From positions 13,648,655 through 13,712,654 of the forward strand of contig NC_134033.1 in assembly GCF_964204645.1 (NCBI RefSeq): a stretch of DNA of 64,000 nt, read 5' to 3'. Positions 14,170 to 37,894 of this stretch are shown piece by piece (within the stretch, counting starts at the first letter, position 1; every line of letters begins with the position of its first letter). A program made the position numbers and the translations under genes. The notes beneath the pieces are model-generated. The model was given only the letters and a program-made list of their open reading frames with translations, made no database searches and had not been told where the DNA came from. The DNA is from Tubulanus polymorphus. Its lineage: Eukaryota; Animalia; Nemertea.

Positions 14170-15855
14170 ACGATAAGCACACTCAAACGTGGTGAACGGA
14201 TAATAAGATAAAATCCCACTATTTACAGATTAAAAGAATTTAAAAACCAGAATTTATTTATTCAATCAAAAATATATAAAAGACACGACGTTTCGATCTC
14301 ACCCTAGAGATCATCGTCAGGTGTGAGATATAGATTAAAAACAGGGGTATATATACAGAGGAGAACAGGTTAATTGAGTAACCTGGTGAGTGGGTAAATA
14401 ATTAGTGTTTGGCAAGGCATGAAGTAATAAACTTAGAAAAAAGGAAATTGTGCGGAGAAAAAGCCATTACTCAAATTGGTACTAATATCTGAGTGACGAG
14501 TAATTAGGGCAGACTCAACTATGTGGCGTTTAGTGTAATTGCTGGAAGTATAAATAATTTCGGCTTTATCAAAATTAAAACGATGACCAGTGTTCCAAAC
14601 GTGATTGGCTACGCCACTTTAATTCACGACCAGTTTCTCCAAAGTAAATTTTATCACAGCCAAAACAAGGAATTTTGTAAACTCCGCATGAGTCCAAAGG
14701 TTTAGATTGATTGTTTTTAACCAAAGTCTTACTAAATTTGTTTTCATACGTGAAAACGATTTGTTTATCCAATAAAGGGAGAGTGACGAAACTTTTCCAA
14801 AACAGGTACATACGGAACTACAATGAACTCTGAAATGTGTTTTTTTATTATCTGGAGGTTTAGAATTGAAGAAGGTACGTTTAGCCTTAGAAATAGCGAT
14901 TTTCAAAATGTGATCAGGGTAAGCCAATTTTTTAAGGGAGTTGGATATATGGTCAAATTCAGCCGAAAGGAAGGTTTCATCGCAGATCCGTAGTGCACGG
15001 AGAAAGAGGCATTGAGCGAGACCAATTTTGATTGATTTAGCAGTAAACGAAAAGAAGTGAAGGTATGCCTCGGCGTTGATAGGTTTGCGGTAGACTGAGA
15101 AAATCAAATGAGAATATTTATTGTGAATTAGAACATCTAAAAATGGAATTTGGTCATTTTAATTGTTCCCATTCAAAAGTGAATTTCAAAGATGGATATT
15201 GGGAGTTGATGAAGTCGATAAAAGAGGTAAGATCAAAATTATCAGAATATAAGCACAGAATGTCATCAACATACCTAATCCAAAAGTTAGGTTTAGAGCC
15301 AGCGTACTTTGGAAGAATTTCGGATTCAAAGTGTTCAAGGAAAAGATTAGCCAAAATGGGGGATAATGGGTTACCCATAGCGAAACCGAAAATTTGTTCA
15401 TATAATTTGTCTTGGAATTGGAAATATAGATTGGTAGTACAGAGTTCCAAAAGTTCAAGTAAACATTCTACAGGAATTGGGAGATCAAGATTGGAGTCCG
15501 GGAGTTTTCTTAAGAAATCGAGAGTTGGTTCAAATGGTTTATTTGTGAACAAGGAAACAGCGTCGAAAGATATAAATTTTTGTCCATTAGGTTTGAGATT
15601 TTTGAGTTTGTCTAAAAGATCCATATTGTGCCGAATGTGAGAATCAGAAAAAGTACCCAAAGCCGGGGAGAGTACTTTAGCCAGATATTTGGAGAGCCGA
15701 TATAATGGAGAATTGATATTAGAAATGATCGGTCTTAAAGGTGAATTGGGTTTATGAATTTTGGGAAGACCATAAGCATAAGGAAGATTAGGAAGCCGAG
15801 AGTTGAATTTGGAGATGAAGTCCGAATGATCAGGAAATTTCTAAGAGATGTTTTT
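14170..15855 (-). mobile_element. Penelope-like retroelement, 5'-truncated and frameshifted (RT + GIY-YIG endonuclease + 3' pLTR)
   Basis: RT motifs SFDAVSLFT, GFAMGNPLSPILANLFL, WIRYVDD (15154-15660); FSVYRKP..LFLRALRIC (14619-15107); GIY-YIG GVYKIPCFGCDKIYFGETGR (14575-14811). Motifs lie in different frames, and the upstream YGLPKIHKP..LRPIIS segment is present near 15715-15780. Confidence 0.93.
14283..14324 (-). ncRNA. Minimal hammerhead ribozyme in the Penelope 3' pLTR
   Basis: Identical to the 7073-7114 motif and on the element's coding strand, as known for Penelope-like elements. Confidence 0.8.
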
Positions 15856-17094
15856 TTAATAAGAAAGAGGATAAATTTATGACTCGTCAACTAACAAAGT
15901 TCAGAGTAGCTAATTAACTTAACAAATAAAATAAAGAATTTCAAACAAACATATTTATTATCATACAACAATTATACAAAATGCCAGGTATGTGCTCGAG
16001 GAATTATAACGTAAGTTCCTCAAACACGTGGACAAAAACAGTCCAACCATGGACGCATAAACTATAAACTAGAGTTTATACATCCATGGTCCAACCATAG
16101 ACTCTAAAACGGAAATGTCTATGGGCCACAACCATGGGCTCTAAACTGTAAGAGTCCATGGCTCCCCGCACTAAAACCAGAGGTAAACCTGGCCAATTAC
16201 TCTGGAAAGCGTAAGATTTAATGTTGAATCAATCTGATTTACATTTTTACTCTTAAAAGTTGACCCGGCCAGCCGCCTATCTACCTTAAAGGTATTACTT
16301 TAAAATCATGATCAAGCTAACCATAACAGATTTAGCAGTTATAGAGATTAACCGATTACAAATATCATTGTTATTTACAAAATGACAGCTGGCCGATCAG
16401 GAAAAACAAGGTATCATTATAGCCTTATAACGGGCTATCCAAAAAAAAAGATTACCGTACTAGCCTTTAACATCACAATTGCTACTGCAAGGTATTTGAA
16501 GGTTTTTATTCACCAAAAACATTTCGACTACAACTGATTTAGAAAATTTGAATCAATAGGATAATAATAAAATAATACAAAGAATTGTAAACTTTGATCC
16601 ATAAAACACCGACAATTGGGACCAGTCTGAATGTCTAAGACTATTAATTTGACAATTCATGAAGTCACCAGGCATAAGTGACATTTGGCTATTTCATGAA
16701 ATATGAAGCATTATATCATATCAACTCCTCTTCAAATGACAATGTAAGAGATATTTAGGATACTCTGTTTATGTATCATCAATCATCAAAGAACTACATA
16801 ACATATCTCCAACATATAAACATTAAAACTCCATAAATCCACAAATTCGCTCTCTCAAATAATCAATCTCTAATTTCATTTCATTAAACATTATTCTTAA
16901 AAGAAAACCGAAATTTCGCAAACTTTGCTTTGTATTTGAGGAATTGTAAGTTACTCATTAACAAATGAGTGAACTATATTCGAAAAACAGTTCAACATAA
17001 AAGCATTAAAACTAATAAAACCTACAGATTCAATCTTGAAAGCTTGAGAATAACTAATCAATCTTTATTTTTTCATTTCCATTAACATTATTTT

Positions 17095-17497
17095 CAGGCC
17101 CGTCATGTGGGGGGGTTCGAACAAAAAAAATATTAAGCGACCTCCCGTCGTCCGCTCTTGCCAGCGTCCATTGTACTTCCATTGACGTTAATCGGGCGAT
17201 TGACATATATGCGAAACTACATCCCAGGAGAATGGCACTTGATAGTCTCATTGCTTAGTGAAACATTTTTGACGTAAATGCTCCAAACAATGTTGACAAT
17301 GCTGATTAAATTACAACATTTTATAATAAATCTGTTTATTTATACCTTGCTTATATATCCACGGGAAATCGCTCAGAGGCCATATCTGAGCACCAGATTT
17401 TCAAAATTTTTCTGGGGGAGGGGACCCAGACCCCCATACTTTAGTTCCGGTTCATTAAATATGAACCCACCCGCGATTTCGTGAGCTGACGGCCCTG
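17095..17497. mobile_element. hAT-like MITE
   Basis: CAGGCCCGTCA ... TGACGGCCCTG termini; no clean 8-bp TSD. Confidence 0.5.
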
Positions 17498-20229
17498 ATT
17501 TTACAAGATAACTAGAGTTTTAAGTAAGATAACTAGAGTTTTGCCAACCTTGCCTGAGGTTTTCAAACATTATCAATGTTATTTTCTCAACATTGTTATG
17601 TTTAATGCAAAGTATTTTGAAGGTTTTTTTAATTAAGATATATTGAGAATCATCGTATAGATATTTCATCTATCCATATATCTAGGTAAATTAGAAATAA
17701 CAGATCACTGAGATATCTACAATTAAGCTGAATTCGATAACTTTTTCGAGATCGGAAATGCATCATGAGCAGATTTGAATCAGGCCCCATATATTGTAAA
17801 ACTGACAATATAGCTATCAAAACATAGCTAGGACAATTTACTAATCAACACCGTTCATATTTCCTCATTTATAGGAAAAAATACTCCTCTGTATTCGATA
17901 GGACCTCAGTTTGATAGTTGCTATAAACCTAACTAAACAGTCGAAAAATTTTAAGATGAATAATGAACACGTATGTGTCGTTTTATTCACATGACAAAAC
18001 CTTGCTAAATGACAGGTATTTACGTACTCGAGGAATTATCATGTAAGTTCCTTGTTAACAAATGGACTGTATTTTAATAACAGTTCGACATAAAAGCATT
18101 TGAACAAGAGACAAAACGTACAAAGTCCCGCTTCCGCTGCCCCTCGTCTTAAGATTTTCAAACATTATCAGTTCGCTCATTTAATACATTTAATACAAAG
18201 TTATTTGAAAACATGACAATAATTTTACTATCGATAACTAATCACGTTTATAGCTGTTTAACATTCTTTCTAAAAAAGAGTAAAATGTAAAATCTCCCAG
18301 ATATTATCCCTAAAACAATCAACAGTAACAGCAGTGACAGGGTGTGCTATAGGCAAAAGGGCGGGTGATCTTTCATCAGTTATTTGAAGCATTCTATCAA
18401 ATCAGTTATTTTCTTAGTGAGTTTGGTTTAGTTAAGGTTTATGGTTATTTGTTTTGTTTATTACTAACTGTCCGATAGAATGCTTAAAACAACAACAGAA
18501 ATGATCATAAGAGGTTGGGAAACTCTAGAGAAGGTTCTTCCATGTGAAGAAGAACCTTTAATGATTAGATAAATGTATTTTTAAAAAAATTCCTGATGAT
18601 GAAGGCCCTATAATTATAGAAGTTAACTAATTGTTTGTTGGTTTTTGTTTATTTTTTTATTACTTATGATTTTATTTGTTTTTTTTTTTAATATTTATTT
18701 TGTTATGTATTTTTTATTCATTGTTTTTTTTTATTTATTTACTTCTTTGATTATGTTCTATGTATTTTGTACTATTTTTTACTATTTACATCATCAGGAA
18801 TTTCTTACCGGTGGAAATATGGGCTCACTTTAAAAAAGTGCTACAAATTCACTGCTGCTCCTAAATAATCGTTTATCATTAAAAACCCCGATTTGAAGTT
18901 AAGCGATCATTGAAAGCCACTCAACCTTATGATATGGATGACGATGAAAGAAGTTAAAACAGCTATAAACAGAATTAAAACGATCAAAATTATTGCTGGC
19001 CATTATCATTTATTCCTTTATATCACATTATTCCTAGCTATACCTCTCTTATACCTCTGTGAATACAATGTACTAAGATACAAGTTTTCATATACCTAGC
19101 TATGATTATCTACATGGAAGCTCAGTGCTAAAACTCTATGTGAAAATCGAGATATTCTACTCATTAGTCAAATCGCTTTTATGGGCATTGTAAAAAAATT
19201 ATGGCATCAACAAATACATCAACACTTTGGTTTATAAACTTAGTATTTGTACACAGAACACTGCCAAACATTATAGTCTATGTTTTTCTTAACTACGTGA
19301 TGATATTCAAGGGCGTAGCCAGTCTATACTGAAGGCCCACTTTTTGGCCAAGGAATCATTGTCAAAACATCTTTATTCAAAGCCCATAAACTTGCTGGGT
19401 GAGTTTAACTAATCAGGTATCAACTTCCTTTATTGCGATTTAAAAGTTTCAACTGTTTAACTGACTACCCTCTCCCTTTTGAACATTTAGGCTATGCAAA
19501 TCATTTTCACTCTCAGGAAATATAAAATGAATCGCTGTTTCTAAGAGACCAAACTATGTCACTTTTACAAATCATGCAAAGCTATGTTTAACTAAGTATG
19601 AAGATTATCTGAACTATCCTGTTGATATCATATCTCAGTTAAGGTGTATTCAACGGACCTACGTCGAACCGTGACGCTGAATGTGATCAATACCATCAAT
19701 TAATGGAGCGTAGATTTCATGAGACTCCAAGAAGGAACTTTCTGTCACATTACAAAGGACATGACACATCTGTTTACAAATCGAAAACAGTTTGCCTAAT
19801 CAATATGAAAGAATTAGGATGCCATTTTATTGAAATATTCAAATATGAATAGTTCCTTCTCAGGCCCAGAGCCCTAATTATCTAACTTCAATTTTCATTA
19901 ATCAACATTAAAACTATTTCTTTTTTTTCCGCCTCTTCAAATAGACAGTGCATTTTAAGACGCATTTTGAAACCCATGTTACACATCAGACTGGTTTGTA
20001 AAAAGGTAATACACAAAATAAATCAATACTGCTCCTGAACAAGTGTTTATAAGGTACGCATTGTCTGTGCTGCTCCTGAATAAATGTTCACAATATATTT
20101 ACATTGTCTCAGCTGCTCCTGATTAATTGTTTATATATAACACACGCATTGTCTGTGCTCCACCTACTGTAGAAGAAATCCGTCATTGGGCGATAAACCG
20201 CTGCTGGCTGAATTTCTCATCTGGACTTC

Positions 20230-23200
20230 TAGGCCTACGCAGTTGGACTCTTCTGTGGTAGTTGATGATTTCAATTCAAGTTAGAATCTTCTGTTGGCAG
20301 TTTCAATCAGTAGATTCTAGATGACGAGTTGATCTCAGGCTGAGCTTCTTCTTATAGATGTGATTTAGCTGAAATGAATAAAAGACGATATCCTGTAATT
20401 AGACAATATCTTACAATATACACAATTTTTCATGTAGCATTAATGATAATAAAATCAATTTACCTTTCCAGATAACTTGGTTTAGTGTCAGCTAAAAGTT
20501 CTAAGTTGGTTGATTAGTAAAATTCAAGGTGCATTCTTCTGTGGTCTGTTCTAATCAGTAGATTCTAGATGGTTAGTTGATCTTAGTATGGGCTTTTTCT
20601 TATAGATGTGATATAGCTGAAATGCACATAAGGAGATATCCTGTATTCACACAATATTTCATACAGCATTAACCCTTTTTAAGTTCATGCTCGACCGTAG
20701 GTCGAGACGGAAAAACATTGGCTTTACGTTCATGCTCGACCGTAGGTCGAGTCCCGGCGGCGCTGTAAAAGTGTAAATAATCGTCGTTTCACCTACAGGT
20801 TTTCATCATAGCACATCATTAGTCGGTAGATGGCGTTTCTGTTGATTATTCGCCGTAAGAATTTTTGATGGTTGCAATTCATTGTTTTTGAGCAATTTTG
20901 AGTCAAAATTTGTCATTTTTTCGAAATAAATAAGGTAAAATCATGAATACAGATCAAGTAATCATAAATCTTTGCTTATGATGAGTTTGGAGACAATGAT
21001 TTAGAGCTAATAGACAGTGAATCCAGTGACTTTATGAAACAGTTCAGATGATATTTATGATATACACGACGAAAATCAAACCCTTCCCAAGGCCAAGTCC
21101 TGGCCCTGACTCTGATGAATCTGACAAATACTGACCAATGCTAACTAACCAAAATACTCAAACCTGGTATCATATGAAAGGTCATAATATTGTCTACAAA
21201 CTTTTTTTTTCACTGCTAAGCTATAGGACCGATAGTTTTTGAACTTTATGGCTTCAAATATGAGTTTTCGAAAAGCGCAACAATGGCCGAAAATTTCTAG
21301 GGTAGTCACAGAGTAAAAAACTTGCACTTAAAAGGGTTAATGATAATAGATTCCAAGTGAATCATCTTACCTTTCAAGATTGCTGAGTTTAGTTGATGAT
21401 TTCAATTCAAGTTGGAATATTCTGTTGGCTATTCGAATCATTTTTGACTAGTTAAACTTTGGCTGAGCATTATCTTATAGATGTAATTTAGCTGAAATGA
21501 ATAAAAGAAGATATCCTGTAATCATACGATCTCTTACAATATACACTATTTTTCATATAGCATTAATTATAATTAATTCCATGTAAATCAATTTACCTTT
21601 CAAGATAACTGGGTTTAATGTCAGCTAGGAGTTCTAGGTTGATTGAGTTCTAAGTTCAAGTTGCATTCTTCTGTCGACTGTTTTAATCAGTAGATTCTAG
21701 ATGGTTAGTTGATCTTAGTATGGGCTTTTTCTTATAGATGTGATTTGTGATAACTGGGTTTAGTGTCGGCTAGGATTGTCTAAGTCTGTTCTCTAATAGG
21801 CAGATTTTAAACAAGTTGTTGACCTCAAGGGCGGCAGTCTCATATAGATATTATTTAGCTGAAACGAGTAAACAAAGATATCCTGTAAATACAAAAATTT
21901 CATTCAGAATTAATCCTAATAATTTCATGTATATCAACTTACCTTTAACGATTGCTAGGTTTGGTATTGGCTTGGATACTCAGTGTGTCAGGACATTAGT
22001 TTCGAACCCCAACTGCCTAATCATTTGTTGTAGTAGTAGCATTAGTTCATCACTGTTTAAGACTAATGAAGGCCGGATATATATCAGATCAGCAATGTGG
22101 ACCGGTGCATAGATTTTGGTAATTAAATGCCTCTTCTGTGCGCTGTTCTCTAATCGGCAGATTTCAAACGAGTTGTTGATCTTGAGCGCGGCTGGTTCAC
22201 ATAGATAGGATAAAGCTGAAAGAGTTAACAAAGATATCCTGTAAATACAAATATTTCATTCAGAATTAATCGTAATAATTTCATGTATATCAACTTACCT
22301 TTAACGATTGCTGGGTTCGGTATTGGCTTGGATCCTCGGTGTGTTCGGATATTAGTTTCGAACCCCAACTGCCTAATTATTTGTTGTAGTAGTAGCATTA
22401 GTTCATCACTGACTAATGACGGCCGGATATATATCAGATCAGCAATGTGGACCGGTGCATAGATTTTGGTAATTAAATGCCTCTTCTGTGCGCTGTTCTC
22501 TTATCGGCAGATTTCAAACGAGTTGTTGATCTTGAGCGCGGCTGGTTCACATAGATAGGATAAAGCTGAAAGAGTTAACAAAGATATCCTGTAAATACAA
22601 ATATTTCATTCAGAATTAATCGTAATAATTTCATGTATATCAACTTACCTTTAACGATTGCTGGGTTCGGTATTGGCTTGGATCCTCGGTGTGTTCGGAT
22701 ATTAGTTTCGAACCCCAACTGCCTAATTATTTGTTGTAGTAGTAGCATTAGTTCATCACTGACTAATGACGGCCGGATATATATCAGATCAGCAATGTGG
22801 ACCGGTGCATAGATTTTGGTAATTAAATGCCTCTTCTGTGCGCTGTTCTCTTATCGGCAGATTTCAAACGAGTTGTTGATCTCAAGCGCGGCTGGTTCAC
22901 ATAGATAGGATAAAGCTGAACGAGTAAACAAAGATATCGTGTAAATACAAATATTTCATTCAGAATTAATCGTAACTAGTGGAAAGCCCGTGGAAACCAC
23001 GGGTGATTTCTAAACGAAGAACTTCCGACTTATTATTTCGTTGCATGGTTATTGAGTATTTGGGCATTTCAAAGTGGCCTAATTTATGTAGTGTGATCAG
23101 CTGTGCCCATATAGAGACCATACGGGATCTCAGGACACACTTGACCTTCTTCCCATGGAGGCCCAAGGATACAGAACTATAGATAGAAACAAATATGTAA

Positions 23201-24545
23201 AGTACAGATATATGATTATTTCATAATGTATGAATTTTGTGACCCGGCAGCTGGGTCACAAAGGCAGCAGTAGCTCGTACTGTATCAACAGTGACAACAG
23301 TGGCTGTCTCTGGACAGTGGCTGTCTCTAGACAGTGGCTGTCTCTAGTCAGTGGCTATGCCAGCTGACCCATGCACCCTCTGTGAACAGTAGGAGACTAC
23401 AAAAATTTGGAAAGTGAATAATTTTGAATGGAAACCATGCCCAAGCGATAAAAGACGTCGAGATCTACCGCCGGGCAAATTTTCAGGGCAATACATCCAG
23501 TAACGATGGAGCAGTCGGTACAACAATTCAGTATCATTATATAAGATAATTTCATGTATATCAACTTACCTTTCATAATTGCTTTGTTCGCTATCGGCGA
23601 GGATCTCCTAAGTTTAGCTGAAAATGAGTAAACAAAGATATCCTGTAAATACAGATGTTTCATTCAGAATTCAGGCCCCTTCTGTGCGCTGTTCACTAAT
23701 CGGTAGATTTTAGATGAGTTGTTGACCTCAAGTGCTCGTTTGACTTCGAGCCAGGTCACATCGTACTGTATAACTGTGACAACAGTGGCTGTCTCAGTCA
23801 GTGGCTATGCCAGCAGACCCATGCGCCCTCTGTTTACAGTAGGAGAGACTACAAAAATTTGGCAAATGGCGCTGTTCCAGTTGGTCGATTTTGGAAGAGT
23901 AGTTGATCTCAAGCTGGGTTTTTTCTTATAGTTGCAATTTAGCTGCTATGATTTAAAGAAGATAGCCTGTAATGACAAATTATTTCATTTAGAATTCATC
24001 ATTATCATTTCCATAAAATATCAACTTACATTTCAAGTTTGCTGGGTTCCCTATCAGTTAAAATGTTCTAAGTTCATTGATGCATTTGATTTAATCTTGG
24101 ATTGTTGTGTGGGCTGTTCTTATCTGTAGATTTATGATTTGTTGTTGATCTCAAGCTGGGCAGTTTGATGAAGATAGGATTCAGCTGAAGAGTAAACAAA
24201 GATATCATGTAATCACAAAACATTTCATTGAGAATGAATCGAAATAACTCCATCTATATTAAGTTACCTTTTATGATCGCTGGATTCGTTATCGGCGTGG
24301 ATCATCTAAGTTGGTTGGTTGATTCTAGTTGGCTGTGCGCTGTTCCAGTTGGTCGATTTTGGACGAGTAGTTGATCTCAAACTGGGTTTTTCTCATAGTT
24401 GAAATTTAGCTGCAATGATTAAAAGAAGATATCCTGTAATGACAAAGTATTTCATTTAGAATTTATCGCAATAATTTCAACTATATTAAGTTACCTTTTA
24501 TGGTTGCCGGGTTCATTATCGGCGAGGGTCTCCTAAGTTGGTAGT
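20230..24545 (-). repeat. Array of ~12 duplicated exon-intron-like modules (putative spliced lncRNA), including three ~350-bp near-identical units at 21880-22975
   Basis: Recurring minus-strand AAAG|GTAA(G/A)TTG donors and ..TTCAG|CT acceptors, with a conserved ACAGGATATCTT intronic motif; stop codons in the frames checked. Confidence 0.7.
20673..21336. mobile_element. Non-autonomous piggyBac-type element
   Basis: TTAA|CCCTTTTTAAGT ... ACTTAAAAGGG|TTAA. Sister modules show the empty site GCATTAATGATAATA. Confidence 0.88.
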
Positions 24546-24725
24546 CTAATTTTACATATCTTTTGTTGTTTTTTCTGTGTAAATAGTCCGAAAGTTTACA
24601 ATGTTTGAATTTTGTCTAATTTTACATTTCTTTGCTTTTCTTTTCATGTAAATAGTCCGAAAGTTTACAAGGTTAAGATAATTTTGTCTAAGTTTTACTT
24701 TTTACTTTTGCTTTCTCCGTGTAAA
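24544..24725. repeat. ~70-bp tandem repeat, ~2.5 copies
   Basis: GTCTAATTTTACAT..GTAAATAGTCCGAAAGTTTACAA repeated. Confidence 0.8.
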
Positions 24726-26977
24726 GTTTTTTCAAAATCGGAAATCGAAGTACAGATATAGTTGCGTGATCGGCGGTCCATTTAACATAAATTTTCTTTT
24801 CTTGAAATCCAAGCACATAACAGGAAATTTGGTTCCGGTGCCTTCAATTAATCTTCCAACCAGTCTGAACTGGCAAGCATCTGATTGGGGACTGCCTATT
24901 TTGATACATCGAGATTTGGAATATCTATATTACAAGGTAGAAGATCATTTTGTACATATTATGACTAGTTGATTAATAGTATCATACAGTGCAAACCTGC
25001 TAGTAAAATTGCCCCTATATACATTTCGATTCCCAGCTAAACTATGTTCGTATTATTAAATTAACTTCATCGCCAATTAATAAACTTTTAAGAGATATGT
25101 ATTCTTCCCACAGACATCTGAGCCCAGTGAATGGTATTCTAATCCATTTCAGTAATTTTAAATATTGCTGGTAAAATATATACAATGATCTTTTGATTAT
25201 GATAATATAACTAGCTTAACGAACCCAGAATTCCCCAAAACCTAACTGATTCAACAGATCCCACACACATGTGGCCCAGTTAGACACAGACAACATTGCA
25301 CGATACAGTCGTCTCATCCACTGCATTATTTTTAATCAACTTAAATTCCTTATGTTGAATTAATTCTAACTAATTTTCTGATATCTAAGCGATCCATTAA
25401 TTAGTAATCATTCTAGCCACAATTAATTGTCAGTCGAACAATATTTATATGGAGCCTGAAAATCTACACGAGTAGAATTTCAGATGTGGTGAATTCATCA
25501 CTATTTGAATTCATCAGAACTTAAGATAAAATCACATTTTTAGTGGTAAATTAGAAATTCCCTTACCCGAATTGCAATATAATCTTTATTTCCCTTTTAC
25601 AGTTCACTGTGTATAAGGATCAAAAGACCTTGTTATGACCGGACCTCCCTGGTGCGGTGCAAGACATGATGCTGGAATATAGTTTGAAGGAGAGGGGTTA
25701 GTAAAAGAGAGCTATTAGCAAGAGGAATAAGACCTAAGTTTAGGATATCCTGTCAGAATAAGGCTCTCAATCTGACATACACAGTGAAATTGAAATATTC
25801 CCCCTCCAAAATTCAGGAATGTATTTTTGCACGTACAGATTTTTTTTTATCTCCCTTCGATCGGAAGTAAATCTGCATTAAATGATTTTGGCAATATGTA
25901 TCAAAATAATACAGCTGTATGAAGACACAATAGGTTCACTTAGATACAGATAAATAAGTAATGTGCTCAGATACACATGTATCAGCTACATTTTTAATGT
26001 CAATGTACTTGAATTCAAAATAATTTCACATCATTGAATTTACCTTAATTGTAGATATCTAAGTAGTACCTTAATGAGTAATTCACCTTAGTTATATCCT
26101 TATTCATCCTCTAAGTTGTTTGTCCCGCGTGTTGACTAGGTAATGATGTTGTTGGAACGTCCAATGGTGCCATCAGACTCAGTCCCAGAGTCGGATTATG
26201 GATGTTGGTATCACCAGACTTCCCACCATCCGAGTTTGACTTCTGGCTAGCGAAATGACAAGATGAAGAGAGCATATTATATATTAAGTCAAAATGTTTG
26301 TCAGACAGATTCTGACCACTGTGGTTTGAGAAAGCTTTTATTATCTCATAACCATCCCTATCATTAATAGTATTAACTATTATTGTGCCACAGATTTATG
26401 CCAGCTCCGTTCGTGTCTGGGTTAGGTACATATACAGCCAAACCATATACCTCTTCCCCACATGATAAGTGTTTTTTGAGAACACCTGTATTTTGGAATT
26501 AGTAAAAATCAACCCTCGATATACCACTATTGCCCCAAGTTTGCTTAAAATGAGCTGAAATTAAAGAGTTCATAATCATTAATTAACAAGACAAAATTTG
26601 CAACTATATCTAACTTTGATAGTGGATGATGAAAAAGATGAAAGGCCAGGATGAGGGGTCTGAATCAGAAATCGAAGATACAGAGTTTACGATGTATTTG
26701 AAGTACACAAAAGATGCTCGAGATTACAGAGTTCACGAATACAATATAGACGATATCATCCGCTGCGACAAGAAAAATTGGGAAAGATTTTGATGGAAGG
26801 GGAAAAAACCTTGGATGAAAAATAAAATTTACACAGTTTCACGGCTTAAATCGAAGTACAACCATATAGACGCTGGTAATACATAGTTTTAACGGCTTTA
26901 CATCATATTTGATCTAAACCTGAGAAAGAGAAAGAAGTCAGCACAGAAATTCTGGCTGATAACAGCAAAGTCAGAGT

Positions 26978-27600
26978 TCTCAGGGTTCCAACTGGCAGCG
27001 GCAGAGTCGGAGTTCTCTAACGTGGCCTCATCCCAGCTAGTGGCGGGGTGCTGACGACACGGGTGTTACTACGGAGGACCCGCAATCAGAGTAAGATGGG
27101 AAGCGACAAACATCTTCGGCTTCGGGGGATATCCGATCTTCAAGCATCAACACCAAAAGACAACCGGCACCCAGAAGAGAGAGAAAAACTGGGTGAACGG
27201 GGAGCCCATCAGCAAGATGCCAATGGGTAGCCTTAGGCGAAGAAACCAGCCGATTCAGACTAGAATGGACCAAACTGGGGACCCAATTGAGAATTGAGCA
27301 CACCACCTAAGACAACCGGCACCCAGATGACAAGAGAAAAACTGGGTGAACGGGGAGCCCATCAGCAAGATGCCAATGGGTAGCCTTAGGCAATGAACCA
27401 GCAGATTCAGACTAGAATGGACCAAACTGGGGACCTAAAGATCCAACAGCCCCTTCAGTCGAAGATTGCTACCACCCCCATCTTATTCTGATCGCAGGTC
27501 CCCCGTAGTAACATCCGCATCACCAGCACTCCGCCACTAGCTGGAACGAATACCACATTAGAGAACTCCGACTCTGCCGCTGCCAGTTGAAACCCTGAGA
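26978..27600 (-). ncRNA. Putative long hairpin RNA: ~163-bp imperfect inverted repeat enclosing two ~135-bp structured direct repeats
   Basis: Arms 26978-27140 and 27438-27600; direct repeats 27151-27283 and 27301-27435. G-U bias points to the minus strand. Confidence 0.55.
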
Positions 27601-28629
27601 TTGAGAGGGCGGGGCAAGGGATGAATGAAATGAAAGAAAAAAAAAATGAAAAAACAAAAATAATATAGAAAAATAATGAAAAAAATAAGATATAAAATAT
27701 ACCACACATTCATACGACACATATAAACTCCATTCACTCCTCTTGCACACACCGCGCACACAACTCCATCCACTCCGCTTGCACACACCGCACACACAAC
27801 TCCATCCACCGCCACCGGCGCCACACCACCACTCCAAAATACTCCGCGCCACAAGATCGCCAGGAAACACAGCAAAAGCTGAAGAGCTCGAGAAAACGCC
27901 ATCTGATCGTGTCAAAGACTAGTACTCGATTGAACGATTGTGGAGAAATTTCGCCCGGAGCTACGATCAAATGCAAACCCAAATGTAGATATTTTATTGA
28001 ACGGAATTGATTTTCAGTCCACGTCAGTTGAAAACCTGCTTTGATCGATGTTTTAATGTTTATTTTAAAAACAAATTAGATTTACGACCTAGGGTTATTG
28101 ATTAATATCTAATTGTGAGGGTTAGATAAAAGGATCGTGGATGAATTTCCTGCTCGCATGCCACAGTTCTGTAAAATCTCAATCGTCCAGTGCTGCTTCT
28201 AGATACTGTGGCGAATACATAAACTAATCGATGTACTCTGCCCGTATTTGTACAAGGCCTACAGTTTACTTATCTTGCTTAATTTACGTCGTTCGTGTCT
28301 TGTGCCGGTATCCTACGACTATTAATCATATTGGATCCTTTTTCAGCGGTAGAGCTAGATAATTAAATGATAATTATCCGAACAGTAGATTGTTCTATCT
28401 TTTAAAAACTTTCTCCACGTCAAAGTTAATAGTTCAAATATTCAAAATACAAATTATGTTCAAATCCAGATTTCACATACAACAACTCGTTGGCCCACTG
28501 AAAGATAGCAGTGATACAATCATTGGGTAATAAAAGTTAGAAAGAATTAGGTTATCCTCTCAGGGCCTGTTAATTGTACGTCACCGGTAATGGAAAAAGT
28601 AAGGCAAGCAGGAATTAAGGTATGCCTAC

Positions 28630-28735
28630 CCTAGTCAGTAACCTGACTGTGGTTTAGTTTTACGATCGGATATTTTCACAAACCACATAAGCCCATCCAA
28701 CTATAAAAAAGCTTACCACCAACGATTAGGTAACT
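28630..28735. repeat. Dispersed repeat, inverted copy at ~44810-44920
   Basis: TAGTCAGTAACCTGACTGTGGTTT..ACGATCGGATATTTTCAC..AAGCTTACCACCAACGAT matches the reverse complement of 44830-44920. Confidence 0.8.
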
Positions 28736-30794
28736 AACTACGCCTACCCACATTATCCAACTACAAAAGCCTTGATGAGAAAAGAAGAATTAGCAACATA
28801 ACCAAAATCGAAAAGGAAAATATCGAAAGTTCAGGATATCAAATTAACTTAATTATGGCTGCTCAAATTCAACAACCACTAAAACCGATGCCTGAAAGAG
28901 GCTTGAAGCTCACACCACGAGGATAGATCTAAGCAAATATCCGAATTTCAATTGCGGGGTACGGGTCGAATGAGAGAAACATCTCAGGGAAACATCTCAA
29001 ATGACACTGCGCGTAGATTGTTCACGTCAGGAGTCATCAAACTCAAACAGTCCCATAAAAATGAGCACCTGAAGTCTACGTATCAAGGACAGGGTGGCCA
29101 TTTTATCAGAATCTTGGGAAGAAATCCGTCGAGGAAGCGATGGATAAAGGCAAATACATCTTTTGTTTAAAAAAACATGTTTTGAACATTATTTCCATAA
29201 TATTGAAAGTATGCCTAGTTACAATATTTCTCATTAATAAACCAAAACCGACCCTGAAAGATATATTCATTCTGCAAGGAGGTTGGTTTGCAATTTGGGT
29301 GGTAAACTATTGGAGATTTGGCTGTGGAAGGTATGAATCACATTATGTTTCATTCAGTAGCCTATGTCGTAATACATAGCGATTGTGCGCTCAGATTTCA
29401 CATGGTCACAGTCGAATGATCGTGGGTGGGTATTATCTCAGGGAATTCACTATACACCAGTTCAATTGAGTCTATTCACGCTCGTAACACAAACTAAGTC
29501 CCGTACTAACCTACGGTCAGCCCTATGTGTATGGGCCCTGGTTGTTAATTATTAAGACGATTTTTGATGACTGCGGTCTTTCGTTTTAGGTAGTTTGGTC
29601 ATTGTTCTGAAGGTTGACCGAATTTCATCTGGGTTTTCATGCAGACTTTTCGAATTTGTCTGCCCAGGCTTTCTTAGCGTTTTGAATACTTAATTGGTGG
29701 TTTCCTCAGCAGAAGGCAAGGAGATTGCCGATGGAGTTTCTTTGTTTTTGTATCTCTCGCTGCCTCTCTTGTATGCTGGTTAACCCAGCATGGATGCGGC
29801 TTCAGTCTGGGTTATTTCTATACATAGTAGTAGGTCTACATAAACCTTTTGTATCAGGCCCCTGTGGCCGGCCGTTTCGTTCCAATTTTGATTTGGCGTG
29901 CGAATGATATCGACAACTCTGAAAAACCGCTATTGATGAATGGATTTACGAGTTTATCATGGACGTTAGAGTCTGATACATTGTCCTTGTTACCGATTCC
30001 CTACAACCGTTTTTTGTTTGTGGAACGACGGCTAGGTACTAGACTATCATGGACGTAAACTAGTTTATACGTCCATATGAGTTTATCAAATGTTCCACTG
30101 CCGGGTTGAATACGCGCCTCTGTACCCAGCTCAACGATATCGAATTCCAGAATCCCACATCTTTGCGGTCCCAGATCCGACGCGAGTGGATTGAGTGCAT
30201 GATCGAATAATAAAACCCCGGCAATAGACAGATTTTAATTTATAAAATTTTTTATTCAATTGAGTGGAGACATATTAGGCTTTTTAGATTACTTACAGCG
30301 TGGATCCTCTGGAAATTCTGCCAACAACTTCATTGCGCTTACCACTCATAATTTGAAAAAAAACCCAAATTTCTTTCTTTAATTTTGATACTGGATTAAA
30401 CGGTACATCATCATGTAAATCTAGGCAAGTCCATATTAAGAATTTCGTTTCTTGTTGTCAGTCTTAAAATGATAGTATCTGTTTTTTTCCAAAGTATTTT
30501 AAAGCCTGTTTGGTCAACGGATGGCTATAGTGACAATCAAAAAGATTGCTGATTTCACAATACTCTTCGGCAGCTAAACACTTGCTTCTTACCGGTCAAC
30601 AAGTGTCAGTGTGTCCGGTTTAAGCTGTATTGCCACTGATATAATCGCATCATCATGTTTTCCGCACATCCTCGTCTCCGGACAATATTGGTGGAAATAT
30701 TGGGTTGAAAAAAGAGGTGGATTGCAAAAAACCACTGACTGGTCAACTAACAAACAACTAACGGATCGTCTAAGTCGGTTCATGAGTTAAATTC

Positions 30795-31090
30795 GTTCTG
30801 TGGTAGTTGATGATTTCAATTCAAGTTGAAATATTCTGTTGGCTATTCGAATCAGTACATTTTTGACTAGTTAATCTAGTTAGGCTGAGCATTTTCTTAT
30901 AGATGTAATTTAGCTGAAATGAATAAAAGAAGATATCATGTAATTATACAATATCTTACAATATACACAATTCTTCATATAGCATTAATCATAATAAATT
31001 CCATGTAAATCAAATTACCTTTCAAGATAACTGGGTTTAGCGTCGGCTAGGAGTTCTAAGTTAGTTGATTTTTGTTGTTATTGTTTGACT
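30795..31090 (-). repeat. Isolated copy of the exon-intron module of the 20.2-24.5 kb array
   Basis: High similarity to 20250-20510 and 21390-21650, including the acceptor next to 30913 and the donor next to 31019. Confidence 0.85.
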
Positions 31091-31545
31091 AAGTTGGTTG
31101 GTTGACTTTTGCGGCTTCGTTTCATATCTTAACAGATTCAGGAACTGTGAGGCCACAGGCCTTTCTCCTGATCGAATCACTTCTATTAGATTTGCAAATA
31201 ACACTTTTCCAGAAATAGCGGGGCGGGTGGGATGAGCGCGGAGGTGGCGGCCGGTACGTCGAATTTGCTACTTCGGCAGTCTTACCCAAATTACGCTCAA
31301 ATTCAAAACCCAGATCTAATCGAGATTTTTGTGCGTTTTTAAGTTGCCTAAATGAACTTAGAATCGCTTTAAGCACTTTCACAATAATAAAATATATAAT
31401 TTGTAATTGAATTGAATGAGCGTCGCGGGCCGCAGTAGGAAACCTCGACTGCCGCAGAAGATCTTAGTGGCAGCACCGGACGGAATAAAGAAAACCTTGG
31501 TCGCGTGCCACAGTAAGAAACCTCGACTGCCGCAGTAGGTTGAAA

Positions 31546-34500
31546 ATGGCGTTTGACAAGAACCAGGAAGTAAATTTAGCGGCGTCGAATGTAGCTAATA
31601 CGAGTATGGAGACGATTCGATGTACATTATTCCCGCAGAATCAACACCAGTGTGTAAGTGTCCGACTGTTAAACGTGTTTCATTTATCTGAACTCGTGTC
31701 AATTGTTGGGAATCAGGGGAGTTAAACAAGGGAAATCCTGGAAGCAAATCAATTCAACCAACTAATCAAATGTCAAATGTATTGTATTCCGGGCATTGAT
31801 TGAATCAACTACAATCACAAATGCTTCTGACTTTTTTTTTCGCTAGGAAATTGAATATACACCAAATACATTGTTAAGTTATTTTGTGTGGCTAGAAAAG
31901 CCAAGGTTTATTCAGCAATTGAGGATTGTTTTAAAAAGGCATGTTTCGACCGTCGTCGAAGACAACCAACAATGTTTTAGTAATCACACTGCGCATCACC
32001 TAAAGTTAGAAATAGTATTTGTTGTTGTCATTTGACAAGACTCCCCAAGATCAGCCATTAGTCTCGAATATTTTTATCAGCCAAATTGACAATGATTATT
32101 TTTTTCATTTCATTTCTAGGATGTTATAATTGGTGTAAAACAAGCCATGGCTGCCTTATCACTTGTTGGCTGGTAAGTTTGAACTAAAAAGGGCTGGGAC
32201 TGAGATGAGAGAGGGCATGAGGAGGGTTCATCGGTTTATTTCAAATCAAATTCTCTAAAGAGATTGATTTAATGTCGAAATGTACTTTTTGTCCAATTTT
32301 AGTTTGTTTATGATTGTTGTTATTTGGATTTTCCGGAAATACGCCTCATTCACTCAGGTAGGAACTAAGCAACATCCCCATCCACTGTCTTTCCGAGTCA
32401 CCTTCAGCTCTTTATAAATTCATGCGCATTACCAGCACCTCCCTTATGGCTGTCGAGATTTCGTAATTTACCCTAAGATAAAAGGGTTGTCTAAAATTCA
32501 CCTTAAAAATGATTTACCAAAATGGTTTAAGTTAAGATAAAACAAATTATTGCTTTTGTGATTTACTAAGTTTAACTTAATCAAGTTTTAAGATGTAGAA
32601 AATTCAGAAAGTAGATCAAGCCTACCTCGTAGGGTTCTATTGGTTGTTTATTGTAGCGTTTGGTTTTATACCTGAGTATATCAGCGTTACTGCTCAATAC
32701 GGCGTACTTAATGAATGTACTACAACCCGCTGGTCATATCTGTAACTTCCAGGCATTCTTGTTCACTTATTTCGGTAGGTCATCGTTATCGGATACTGAT
32801 ACCTCGTTTGTTTACAATTCCAGCGCTTAATTCTGTATTTGACGATTTCTGCATTGTTGCATAGCACAGCTTATTTAATGGGTGAACTGCACCCTGACGG
32901 CCCGCTCTGTGACTTTCAAGCGTTCTGGCTTACTATGCTTGGTATGTACGACAGTTGAAATTAATTTCAGTTATATTGTAACGTAGTCTAACACTATTTG
33001 GCCTGCTTTTTAAATACTGTTTTATAGTAGTTCAATTTTATAATATTTTAATCCTTTAACCCTGGTTAACTTTTACTTGATTCCTACTTTTTGAAATGAG
33101 CCAGTTTGACGAACACTTCACTTGATGAGCCAAAATGATGCCGTCGTCTAAGGACTTTTTCAAGCTCCCAAACTTTTAGACTTCAAGTGTGGGATTAAGC
33201 TTAATCATATTTTCAGTAGCTCATTGTGTTTGTTTATTTTGCTGTTTCAGATTGGAATGTTTTACTTTGGGTTTGTTGTATTACTGTGAATCTCTACATG
33301 AACGCGATACAAGCTAAACTTATAGACCGTTACGAATGGTAGGATGTTTTAAAAACCAGGCTAATCGTACCTCTATTTTAGTACATGAAGGAATTAAACT
33401 GGACTTAACTTCAACTTAATCTCCTCTCATTTTCGGAAAAATTGAGTTCATAATTTTTTCTCTTCTTCAGGGCGTTCCATGTTGTGGCATGGTTATTTTC
33501 ACTATTCATGGCCTGTTTACCATTTATCGGGGACCACTACGGACCAGCAGGTGCCTGGTGGTCAGTATCGTAAACTATGAAATAATGGCAATAAATCAAG
33601 GTTCAATTTGCTAAAGATCTGGGGCTGCAATTGCTCAGAAGTTGGTTAGAGTTAATCGTGGATAGTTGACGTAGTGACAAAAGTTCATTGTTACTATGGT
33701 ATTTATCCACTTGGACCCAGTTCCACAGTTGTGAGTTAGAGTTAACTCTGAGTTAAAGTTAGTTCATTTTCAATGAGTTAATGCGGAGTTAAATCTTAAC
33801 TCAGAACTGTGGAACTGGACCCAGGACCCAGTTCCACAGTTGTGAGTTAGAGTTAACTCTGAGTTACCGGTAAAATTAGTTCATTTTCAATAAGTTAACT
33901 CGTGAGTTAAATCTTAACTCACAACTGTGGAACTGGATCCAGTTATCTAAATAAACCAACTTTCAAGCAACTGGTCCCTACAGTTTTTTCCGCGTGTTTA
34001 GTTATTAGATATTTTCATCTTTCAGTTGGGTCGTTGACGATGCTAGATGGAGATTTGGCATGTAAGTCATCTATCGTATAGTATTATTTTGTCGTTTTCC
34101 CCTGAAGTTGAAGACTTGAATTCTGTTTTTTGTTTGCAGATGGTATGGTCCGCTGTTTGGTATAATATTTATGCTGTTTTCTGTATACATCTATATAACG
34201 GTTATGGTCAAACGACGGGTAAGTTCTCGACTTCGAATTTTTCAAATTATCCACGCATTCCATATTTCATAAAGTCCTATGACTAGCTCGGACATGTTAG
34301 TTAGATCCGTAAGTACTTAGCAAAATCTAAAAGAGCTAAAGTTGTGGTAATACTTTGTTATTTTTTATAGGTGAAAACGTGGGAAGGCCTTTATGATCCA
34401 GATACCGAACGTAAAAAGGTTTGCAATTTTTTCAGATTTTCCACTTAGAAATAATTTGAGGATGGGGATCATTCATTTATTACATTTGTTAAATTATTAT

Positions 34501-36483
34501 TCATTTATTACATTTATTAAATTTGACTTTTCAGGCTAGGTACTAGACTACCCTACCCCCCCCCTCCGTACGGAAAATCGGCAATTTTTTCATATACATT
34601 AAGCATTACAGTACGCAATTGCACTGACCCCTCCCCCTCCCCTAATGCGTACGTAATAAATGAATGATCCCGTACCATAATCTCTGGGTCACTCACACAG
34701 GTCGACACTGATCTTTTAATGCCCCGATATGTTTGAATATTTCAGCAAATGTTAAAAGAAGATGTAAAACCACTAATTGCCTACCCTTGTGTGTATCTAG
34801 TGTGTTCATCATTCTCACTTATAAACAGGTAACAAACAAACAATCATTTTCATCTTCCTGGCTGAGATTTGAACTGTTGTTAAAAGTGAATTTTTTCCAA
34901 ATTTCTTTCAGAATTCAAAATGCTGTGAATCCTGGTAATCCAGTGTTTGCTCTTGTGCTCTTACAGGCAATATTCTCTCCAGTTCAAGGTAGGACCTTGA
35001 TTTTCATGATTAGAATGTTGCCATCATAGTCTTGTATTGCAGCTCCTCTCGATCTATTCCTTATATAAGATCACAAATTATTTAACTTTGGGCAGTTGTT
35101 GTGGGGGTTAACAGATAAACAAAAAACATGAAAGATGGCTCTCTGCTTTCATCCCCCAGTGACATCATCAAATCCGTATATATGTATTTCATATTTCAGG
35201 AATGTTGAATGCAATCGTTTTTGGCCTCGACAAAAATACGAGAAGCAAATTGACCCCTTCACAAATAAGGGTAAGTATCATTGTGTGTGGATCTGCTTCT
35301 ACGGTTACCAGCAAAAATCTTTATCTCAATTAAATATTTTGATTTTCTCATAGTTCAGTGTTACTCACTTTTCAAAAATCTTTCCCAAAAATTAATCCTT
35401 GAATTTTTGCTGTCGCCTATTTTGATTTTCCAATAAAGAAAATTTTGTTTGTGTGTGTGTCATGCTTTTAATGTTTTGTATACAAAGCATGCCAATGTTT
35501 TTAGTTTACATGGACTGCGCCCAGTTTCACTGTTGTGGCTTGACGTTTGACAAGGCAACTGTGGAACTGGGTCTGTTGGCAAATTTTAATAAGTGTCCTC
35601 TGGGTTGAAGTTAGTACCCAGTCTATAAAACTGGGGCTTGTGATTAGTAAATGGCATATCATTGTTTTCAATGCACCAACCCCCAAGATTTACGTTTTGA
35701 AGAACTTCATGATTTGATTTTGGAATGAAGCCCGGTTTTCTGGTTCGTCGTTTTGTTCCGAGATTATTTGCTATGCGATTTTGTTTGTGGAGACACTTAC
35801 TGTGGCAACTGGGTACTCTCTACCTCCATCTCTATCTCGATAGTTGTAGAATGAATGTTGTCTCAAAGTAAATTGATTTAGATTTCTCATTACTCTATAC
35901 CTAGCTCTTAGCCAATTGGAAAGCTCAATTCTCATTCTTAACCAATCAGTAAGCTCTCTTTCTGTTGTAACCTAATCGGTGAGCTTAATGCCGATATAAC
36001 TCTTAGTCTTCAAATCTATCTATTGATTTTTTATTGATTAAGATTTTGTTATGTTTTAACGAATTAGAAATTTTTCATTAAATTAAATTTCAATATCAGA
36101 AAATTTATCTATTTTCAACCATTCATCAGAACAAAGGTAAAACAATATCTTAGGAATCGATACATGTAGTTGATTCCAACTGGCAAAGATTATTAATTAC
36201 CAAAATATTGATTCCACCTTTAATAATGGCTCATCGAAGTTGAATTCATTCAACTCGTCGCTTCAGAGCTTTAATTCTAACTGATCTTAAGTTCGGCTTG
36301 CTTTTTTCCTACCTATAGGTGGCGCTAGCTAGTCGTAACGAGCCCAGTATCATCAGAGAGTACCCGGTAGCGTTCAGAAGTCTCGACGCCGGCAGCGATG
36401 AAAACGCCATATCACGCGGAAACAATCAAGAATTCTCGCAGATACCGAAATATAATAACGTTTCATACTCTAGACTTCACTGA
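31546..36483 (+). CDS. Cyclic AMP receptor-like (CrlA/GCR1/GPR157-type) 7TM GPCR, 13 exons
   Basis: Exons 31546-31653, 32120-32172, 32303-32357, [32657-32774 or 32824-32941], 33251-33338, 33471-33560, 34026-34061, 34140-34218, 34371-34418, 34746-34828, 34912-34988, 35200-35270, 36319-36483. Motifs QRLILYLTIS, LCDFQA, YGPAGAWCWV, WYGPL, AYPCVYL..INRI, SPVQGMLNAIVFG; seven hydrophobic segments. Confidence 0.9.
32657..32774 (+). CDS. GPCR mutually exclusive exon 4a (TM2-ECL1-TM3)
   Basis: AG|..|GT, 118 nt, RLVLYLSISALLLNTAYLMNVLQPAGHICNFQAFLFTYF; paralogous to 32824-32941. Confidence 0.88.
32824..32941 (+). CDS. GPCR mutually exclusive exon 4b
   Basis: AG|..|GT, 118 nt, RLILYLTISALLHSTAYLMGELHPDGPLCDFQAFWLTML. 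Confidence 0.88.
33620..33980. mobile_element. Nested MITEs: two tandem GGACCCAGTTCCAC-family copies inside another MITE
   Basis: Outer TIRs ..TTGCTCAGAAGTTGGTT / AACCAACTTTCAAGCAACTGGTCCC; inner copies at 33713-33822 and 33825-33940. Confidence 0.7.
34464..34672. mobile_element. MITE (PIF/Harbinger-like termini)
   Basis: GGGGATCATTCATTTATTAC ... GTAATAAATGAATGATCCCG 20-bp TIR. Confidence 0.7.
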
Positions 36484-37765
36484 GATATACCGAGGATAGA
36501 TGATTATTTTACCCGTCCATGTGCCTTGCACTTCACACGAATAGTTTTATTCTCAAAGCTTGGAGTAGGGTATTCGAATTGTGACGGTCAGTCGCCCGAA
36601 TTCCGCAGATTCGAGATAAGCTTGTTCTGCAGTATAAGCATTTTACGACCAGACTGATGCTTTATGCCCATGTATATAACCAATCTAATAAATCTAGAAA
36701 AGATTATGAAGTGGCCTTATTAAGCACACTATTATGGACTTCAACTACTGTAGAAGTGTTGAAATGAGTTACCATTTGTAGATTGGCATTGTATTAGATT
36801 GGGATCTCTCTAATGAGAGGACTTTTACTAATTCTAATTAGGAAGGTGCCTACTACCTGTTCTGATGAAACTGGCAAATCGTTCTTAACCATCTTCAACC
36901 AATCACATTGCAGGATCGAGTTCCTCGACCGATCATGTTGCAGGATGAATGTGCCTGTATTTCAATTGATAGTACCTGGTAGTTTTGGATGATTTGTCGG
37001 TTAATGAACTGGGGGAAATTTGCCATACAGATCGCTTTTCGTGATCTATAATACTTAATGTGTGCTACTAGTCAAGGGAACATTCATATATCCTGTTTTG
37101 CAATCCCAATGTTTGGCCTTCAAAATGTCCAATCATGTATTTTCTAATATCTACAAATATTTGAGAACGCGTAGTATAGGTTTCGGACATCTCAGAAATT
37201 GCCAATCTCATGTACTTTGTGTGAGTGTTCCTTAACAGTTTTTGTGATCTGGAAATTATTTGGATGCAAACACTTCATTATTTAAAACAAATGTTGTTGT
37301 TGTTGTTATACTATTAATGTTAATGCTAATGTTAATGTATACCGGTTGAAATATAGTTTACTCAAAAAGAACAACTACATTGTAATAATGTTTAAATATT
37401 AATACTCAATATACATACATATATATCTATATAAATGTATTTCTAAAAAATGTATTTCAGTTCTTTCTTCTAAATTTACTTCGGAATTATTTATCCAATC
37501 GTCATATCACATGGTGGCTCGGTACACAGATGGAAATTTCAAAATCCTTGGCCCTACTCAGTGACAGTTTGTGATGAAATAGACCGTATTTATGGAGGTT
37601 GCCATATTGTTTATATTTTGATTAAGTCAGTTAATCATTAAATACTATCTACTCCAATTGGTATCAGCTGAAGAATGGGCCTGTTTTGGTGACTGACAAA
37701 CCATTATTTTGCATGAAATTTTTTAATTCTTATTAAGTTTTTTTTGCGTTTGCTATTATAAATAG

Positions 37766-37894
37766 ATGGCAATGGAGTCACGTGGGAAGTCGCGATCAGT
37801 CATACGAGAATACCCGACAAACGAGAGTCCTTTCACTATCGGCGCGGAGACGAACGAAACCAGGGACGACATCTGCTTCGGAAATACTACGTAA
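37766..37894 (+). CDS. GPCR alternative terminal exon 13b
   Basis: TAG acceptor, phase 0, MAMESRGKSRSVIREYPTNESPFTIGAETNETRDDICFGNTT*; homologous to exon 13a VALASRNEPSIIREYP.. Confidence 0.8.
   Translation: MAMESRGKSRSVIREYPTNESPFTIGAETNETRDDICFGNTT

Follow-up and report, generated by a model that had tools for sequence, protein, structure and literature searches.

A strand-specific fold-back as an internal module of a dispersed non-coding repeat unit in the nemertean Tubulanus polymorphus

The window analysed here, a stretch of 64,000 nucleotides of Tubulanus polymorphus (assembly GCF_964204645.1, contig NC_134033.1, positions 13,648,655 to 13,712,654 of the forward strand), contains a long fold-back whose arms differ in a strand-specific manner, and a preliminary description had taken it for a single hairpin-RNA gene. 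What kind of locus is this fold-back, and has one of its strands been kept in a paired form? A repeat finder and an alignment found the two reverse-complementary arms where they had been reported (Table 1), with arm segments 26978-27025/27553-27600 being 96% complementary and 27028-27100/27477-27549 being 84% complementary. Global alignment of the outer 123 nt of the arms gave 106 matches, with 12 G-U pairs and 3 A-C mismatches on the minus strand; of the remaining positions, 1 is a non-transition next to the indel and 2 are gaps. The earlier count of 13 G-U to 3 A-C, with all of them called transitions, was essentially right. Over the full 163-nt arms the minus strand showed 19 G-U pairs, 5 A-C mismatches, 7 other mismatches and 2 gaps (19 versus 5, two-sided binomial p = 0.0066), so that the trend does continue into the inner arm as claimed, although with transversion-type mismatches, the 7 of which lie mostly in the inner part of the 163 nt. 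The interior of the fold-back contains a 152-nt tandem duplication (27143-27283/27297-27435) that the preliminary description had not mentioned.

Table 1. Features of the repeat unit, its fold-back and its borders, in window coordinates
Feature	Position	Strand	Basis or remark
Window copy of the large non-coding repeat unit	15880..30755	-	Collinear matches to copies on C7, C2 and C8; short ORFs only
19-nt direct repeat TGACTSGTCAACTAACAAA, left copy	15880..15898	.	End analysis
19-nt direct repeat TGACTSGTCAACTAACAAA, right copy	30737..30755	.	Head-to-tail unit junction in C8 and C2
Block T1	29989..30502	.	In C11, C4 and C10 both ahead of the unit body and near the right end
Block T2	30503..30754	.	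Directly precedes 15880 in other copies
Unrelated dispersed repeat abutting the unit's left end	14400..15859	.	Outside the system
One monomer of the unit's ~300-bp internal repeat	30763..31072	.	Just past the right end; unique DNA then
Tandem cassette repeats with canonical short introns	20250..24545	-	aag/GTAAGT ... TTTACAG/g
Fold-back module	26978..27600	-	Long imperfect stem and branched interior; minus is the favoured single strand
Hairpin 5' arm in minus sense	27438..27600	-	Arm alignment
Hairpin 3' arm in minus sense	26978..27140	-	Arm alignment
Fold-back interior	27141..27437	-	152-nt tandem duplication; small local hairpins within each unit

Both strands of the fold-back were folded as RNA. 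The minus strand was clearly more stable, as had been expected, with a minimum free energy of -384.8 kcal/mol (z -30) compared to -317.8 kcal/mol (z -19) for the plus strand, and the long inverted repeat can form an extended RNA duplex with a stem of ~165 bp. The minus strand is G+T-rich across ~900 bases, sequence outside the stem included (AT skew 0.35 in 27001-28000), and part of the energy gap between the strands is therefore compositional. The results agreed with the reported setting of a GC-rich segment in an AT-rich, gene-free region: the G+C content was 0.49 in 27001-28000 versus ~0.37 in the surroundings, and only short ORFs were present, those of at least 99 aa in 18000-38000 being just two, of 131 and 114 aa, which overlap each other on the minus strand at 27520-27915. 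A reading as coding remnant was rejected, these two ORFs overlapping the right arm without a Pfam match. The tRNA scan of the window returned none, and blastn against a phage collection, where no informative result was expected, gave no match. The ~100-nt tract adjoining the fold-back (27601-27700), rich in A on the plus strand and in T in the minus sense, ends ...ccctctcaaTCTCAG/G at the stem's first bases; it could represent a 3' splice site and its polypyrimidine tract on the minus strand, or else the tail left by an old retro-insertion in plus sense.

Searching the animal's own genome (268 Mb, 77 contigs) placed the 623-base fold-back at 24 loci on 12 contigs, 20 of which hold full-length copies of 87-98% identity. 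All 72 matches lay inside these 24 family loci, the remainder being reverse-strand self-matches of the same loci, and no arm matches were found outside the family in the 268 Mb. Thus, at the sensitivity of the search, no trans target is visible. The 40 bases on each side of the fold-back were the same in 20/20 full-length copies, and in all 20 the flank homology extended across the entire 1.5 kb retrieved per side. The target-site duplication (TSD) that the preliminary description had failed to see is indeed missing around the fold-back, because the flanks belong to the same repeat and no mobile element terminates at the arms. These results indicate that the fold-back is an internal module, without ends of its own, of a non-coding unit of ~14.5 kb.

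The same data bear on what the fold-back had been thought to be. A MITE or Foldback element in its own right was ruled out by the flanks common to all copies; dispersed copies with TSDs and without strand bias had been named as the mark of an ordinary MITE, and the copies are dispersed, yet the fold-back has neither its own ends nor a TSD and its bias holds across copies. A host hairpin-RNA (endo-siRNA) gene present in one copy, or a rod of viroid or deltavirus type, would account for a long G-U-biased duplex on one strand, but we regard either as extremely unlikely: uniqueness is refuted by 24 loci on 12 contigs with common flanks, no homologous target lies outside the family, and Rfam at gathering threshold returned no family, ribozymes included, over the whole window. 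The supposed viroid-like kinship found no backing in these searches, an Rfam E-value scan of 26400-28200 giving a lone chance snoRNA match (E 0.73).

Same-orientation pairs of fold-backs 11-20 kb apart occur on C8 (13422408/13436068), C5 (22720981/22731840) and C3 (7298182/7317663), and these pairs show that the unit has been duplicated locally in tandem; an additional internal repeat is present in the C3 copy at 7317663-7318387. A diverged relative of 469 nt (L045, C9:11358645-11359113) has lost most of one arm, and its minus-sense strand still folds better (-212.8 versus -150.6 kcal/mol); it yielded no useful covariation.

The 20 full-length copies were aligned in the minus sense, and changes at paired positions were sorted into private ones, seen in one copy and taken to have arisen after insertion, and shared ones, seen in at least two copies and taken to have arisen in the copy-making lineage. 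At Watson-Crick pairs of the arms, private changes divided as neutrality predicts (18 to G-U versus 22 to A-C), whereas shared changes went to G-U in 19 cases and to A-C in 7 (Fisher p 0.04 for the contrast); the shared-versus-private comparison rests on tens of events, with p 0.01-0.04. Considering all pairs, variants present in at least two copies comprised 30 exchanges between Watson-Crick and G-U states versus 7 between Watson-Crick and A-C states, and on the RNAalifold structure the variants present in at least 3/20 copies were 18 of the G-U type, 0 of the A-C type and 1 other. Hence it is only at paired sites, and in the lineage from which new copies come, that the bias arises; copies that have already landed do not acquire it. 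The family consensus kept it as well, with 15 G-U versus 4 A-C (p 0.019), and folded to -398.0 kcal/mol on the minus strand versus -332.5 kcal/mol on the plus strand, the minus value surpassing that of the window copy. Pair-preserving variants were favoured across copies, but compensatory changes were found at 3/238 pairs only, with a covariation term of -0.87 (RNAalifold). Covariation is nearly absent because the copies are 95% alike, and the case therefore rests on wobble asymmetry.

A passive origin of the bias was weighed against these counts. Transcription-coupled mutation, or A-to-I or C-to-U editing of an RNA intermediate fixed by reverse transcription, could produce it free of selection on pairing, in keeping with the G+T richness of the minus strand outside the stem and with the fact that every G-U-creating change is C>T or A>G on that strand. 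However, the singleton spectrum over 3.6 kb was C>T 135/G>A 146 and A>G 192/T>C 190, and complementary changes were symmetric for private and shared variants alike, both over the 3.6 kb and inside the fold-back. This symmetry, together with the unbiased private changes at paired sites, leaves no signature of strand-biased mutation or editing. Furthermore, shared wobble-creating changes were mostly C>T (18) versus A>G (6), and ADAR-type editing cannot yield C>T. A-to-I editing at the A-C sites had been named earlier as something to look for; the fold-back variants seen in contigs of sequencing runs proved to be states of other family copies and not edits. We consider a mutational or editing by-product quite unlikely, and the data point to selection that acts, in the lineage that spreads, on the minus strand in single-stranded form. 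In this respect the preliminary description, which had proposed a strand-specific structure with its minus single-stranded form under selection, was upheld by the private/shared contrast and the symmetric spectrum.

A second family offered an independent view of the module. Locus L038, 1.87 Mb further along the same contig, contains a similar fold-back of 779 nt in the same position and orientation between collinear anchors (L038 1158-1481, 3454-4060 and 5580-5639 matching window 15918-16250, 23874-24478 and 29880-29935, respectively). The two fold-backs have no sequence similarity (best blastn E 0.59) but are built alike, with tandem repeats enclosed by a long stem. The sister fold-back showed the same strand preference (-443.5 versus -328.5 kcal/mol), and its 235-nt arms carry 32 G-U versus 7 A-C (p 7e-5). 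Related scaffolds thus hold unrelated hairpins at the same place and on the same strand, which argues that it is the structure that has been conserved. A commonplace inverted duplication decaying within a transposable element, functionless and biased by chance, would suit the repeat-rich non-coding surroundings and the near absence of true compensatory changes. It is nevertheless very unlikely, given that the bias is significant in the window copy, in the consensus and in the unrelated sister fold-back, and that shared variants are skewed to pair-preserving states.

The unit that carries the fold-back was delimited against longer stretches from C7, C2, C6 and C8, and its ends were read on a handful of copies. 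In the window copy the order is body-T1-T2, after which the initial 19 nt of the body recur; other copies read T2 and then directly 15880 onwards, so the window copy is circularly permuted. It comprises exactly one unit plus a 19-nt terminal redundancy with the near-palindromic core TGACnnGTCA, a single case, and this is the form that would be expected of an opened circle or a cut concatemer. The right end was sharp in 5 copies, ...(TGGCAAC)n TGGCAATGTCGTCTCAGGGCTTCCATA with unrelated sequence beyond, and reads ...GGGCTTCCATA (TATGGAAGCC... on the opposite strand). The left ends of the C7, C8 and C2 copies were ragged within ~45 nt, at the equivalents of 30487-30530. Units stand head to tail on C8 and partly on C2. 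No TSD, terminal inverted repeat (TIR), LTR or poly(A) was seen at the unit ends. For a non-LTR retroposon one would look for a poly(A) or simple-repeat tail at a fixed 3' end, variable 5' truncation and a TSD; the copies have a fixed right end with the (TGGCAAC)n run nearby and ragged left ends, and neither poly(A) nor TSD was seen in the two copies with both ends read (C7 and C8). An LTR retrotransposon or LARD was rejected, the terminal direct repeat of the window copy being 19 nt at most. The 280-bp T1 repeat is confined to C11-type copies and is not terminal.

These ends raise the possibility that the selected strand is DNA, the unit spreading via a single-stranded or rolling-circle-like form on which the fold-back would be a cis-acting hairpin that, for example, primes synthesis or resembles an origin. 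One sharp and one variable end, head-to-tail units, a permuted copy of exactly one unit with terminal redundancy, and unit ends at which none of the usual terminal signatures was seen would all accord with such spread. Nevertheless, the termini do not fit a Helitron, for which 5' TC, 3' CTRR with a subterminal hairpin and insertion at A/T are required and which was rejected on the sharp end of the 5 copies, and tandem copies can also come from unequal crossing-over between T1 blocks. In addition, the hairpin strand is the strand of canonical introns in both families, as expected for RNA. We judge spread through single-stranded DNA to be unlikely.

Related palindromes were observed near both unit ends (16048-16090 and 30046-30080), reading CCATGGACG.ATAAACTA...TAGTTTATAC.TCCATGG; they could be protein-binding or recombination sites. 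The repeat abutting the left end of the unit has at least 40 scored copies of 86-96% identity, whose matches stop at window position 15859, and overlapping ORFs of 162-168 aa at 14619-15660 within it are without a Pfam match.

Splice signals were found on the minus strand of the unit. The cassettes carry the intron motif aag/GTAAGTTG ... TTTGTATTTACAG/g, and intron-like GT..AG candidates numbered 5 on the minus strand versus 2 weaker ones on the plus strand; all 5 lie within the repeated cassette and so reflect one origin. In the sister family the same cassette exon and 5' splice site lie just downstream of the hairpin in the minus sense, and a pyrimidine tract with CAG follows the hairpin by 45-60 nt in both families. 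A search for sequencing runs that contain the stretch returned four, none of them on record as RNA and all as contigs that may derive from RNA or DNA and give no strand. These contigs cover all of 24300-30200 and therefore say nothing as to transcription. In run X4, one contig lacks precisely the segment 24410-24494, whose borders are GT..AG in minus sense and which lies 2.5 kb from the hairpin. Run depths differed strongly, X4 being near 0 at 28043-28436 and 28831-29815, where X1 reached 250-630, and this hints that some of the four runs are RNA. Taken together, the X4 skip and the depth differences are a hint of minus-strand transcription and splicing and do not amount to evidence for them. 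At window 28634-28830 the summed contig depth was 10 to 1000 times that of the neighbours in all four runs; this segment is a very high-copy repeat embedded in the unit.

What, then, is the fold-back? It is a module without its own ends in which pairing is kept on the minus strand only. We consider it moderately probable that the module is a conserved structural part of a gene-like, non-coding unit of ~14.5 kb present in many copies, and that its selected form is RNA of minus-strand sense, the strand that holds the canonical short introns. The transcript would fold into an imperfect duplex of ~165 bp topped by a branched interior, and its G-U wobbles would keep the RNA duplex while breaking a perfect DNA palindrome. 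The best-supported interpretation of the copies and of the sister family is that pairing is under purifying selection where new copies are made and that the module most likely acts as RNA. Single-stranded DNA, too, tolerates G-T wobbles better than any other mismatch, and RNA and single-stranded DNA are therefore not separable by sequence alone. With low confidence, the module might serve as a dsRNA domain that is diced to small RNAs acting on sister copies, or that is bound in cis for transcript processing or stability. The genome contains one Dicer-type locus. If such small RNAs are made, no targets are visible for them other than copies of the family itself, and this is difficult to reconcile with selection in the lineage that spreads.

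Loci for long hairpin RNAs are familiar from flies, where they are host genes, and as accidental products of transposon rearrangement. Transposon-borne inverted duplications give hairpin RNA, as in maize Mu killer and in read-through hairpins of MITEs and TIRs, and the fold-back resembles Mu killer-type duplications in that its hairpin lies within mobile repeated DNA and its RNA would be homologous to the family's own copies. Those duplications are, however, accidental rearrangements of coding or terminal sequence, with no selection for pairing, whereas the fold-back is a constant part of the interior of its unit, its pairing has been maintained in the lineage that spreads, and it has an unrelated counterpart in a sister family. 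Single-strand origins (sso) of rolling-circle plasmids are long imperfect hairpins that work on one strand and in one orientation, and relatives retain their structure even where the sequences have diverged. The fold-back is like them in being a strand-specific, one-orientation hairpin whose structure is kept while its sequence differs between relatives. Unlike the fold-back, for which a single-stranded DNA stage would be hypothetical, these origins belong to bacteria, act on single-stranded DNA and prime lagging-strand synthesis. MITEs and Foldback (FB) transposons likewise have long inverted arms, a short interior with tandem repeats and multiple dispersed copies, but in our case the mobile unit does not end at the arms, all copies have 1.5 kb or more of flank in common on both sides, and no TSD borders the arms. 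Drosophila hpRNA loci yield endo-siRNAs and are host loci whose arms match trans target genes (PMC10292708, PMC10317233). The fold-back has in common with these hpRNAs a long inverted repeat, an extended duplex in a non-coding transcript and wobbles tolerated on the transcribed strand (transcription being putative here), and some Drosophila hpRNAs are also built of tandem repeats, like the fold-back interior; in contrast to them, its arms match only the 24 copies of its own repeat, and it is a module of a dispersed ~14.5-kb repeat. In engineered G:U hpRNA transgenes, the palindrome is disrupted in the DNA by C-to-T changes, yet G:U wobbles leave the RNA paired throughout, and in plants such transgenes avoid self-silencing with their hairpins still diced (PMC9263138). 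The stem of the fold-back has ~12% wobbles (19/163) versus 18-26% in these constructs (PMC9263138), which are artificial and plant-tested, so that the likeness is an analogy only.

A broader reading would make the unit an undescribed non-coding, gene-like, intron-bearing mobile element whose spread depends on a long strand-specific hairpin; we hold this unlikely. Such an element might be a mobile hpRNA gene, selected because its small RNAs act against a rival or host target that is unrecognisable by sequence, or might carry a cis-acting origin or packaging hairpin on a single-stranded intermediate. From one sister family to another the hairpin would then be replaced in sequence but remain unchanged in place, strand and architecture. 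Returning to the RNA module that we favour, the main outcome at present is that a first reading has been corrected: the fold-back is not a unique gene. Here the hairpin is a constant and, it appears, selected component of a repeat that has reached two dozen places. Should a transcript and small RNAs be confirmed, the units would represent mobile hairpin-RNA units in a spiralian, a group in which, to our knowledge, little is known of endogenous RNAi, and a natural case of wobbles that disrupt a DNA palindrome yet preserve the RNA duplex. Were DNA the form under selection, the module would imply an unusual single-strand stage in a eukaryotic mobile element.

Three of the 24 loci (on C11, C4 and C10) sit as cargo inside a low-copy TIR element. 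This carrier has inverted termini of ~45 nt (GCAAAATGTACCATGTTGATAGAGAATT...) and a 9-bp TSD, GGTTCAGAC at the C11 locus and TCACRTCAG at a 366-bp relative, and is Mutator-like by TSD length; the window copy and most other copies are without these ~45-nt TIRs. A 22-nt motif of the TIR has 17 occurrences in the genome, and examples of the element are L046:146-521 (G000:C3:7962395-7962770) and L039 and L040 (C11). The 366-bp TIR element contains telomere-like (GGGTTA)n repeats and a tRNA-like 3' half (GTTCGAATCC...CCA). Elsewhere in the window, at 61624-62871 on the minus strand, a 415-aa ORF with a tetraspanin domain (E 1.5e-14) was found, an ordinary host gene that confirms an animal genome.
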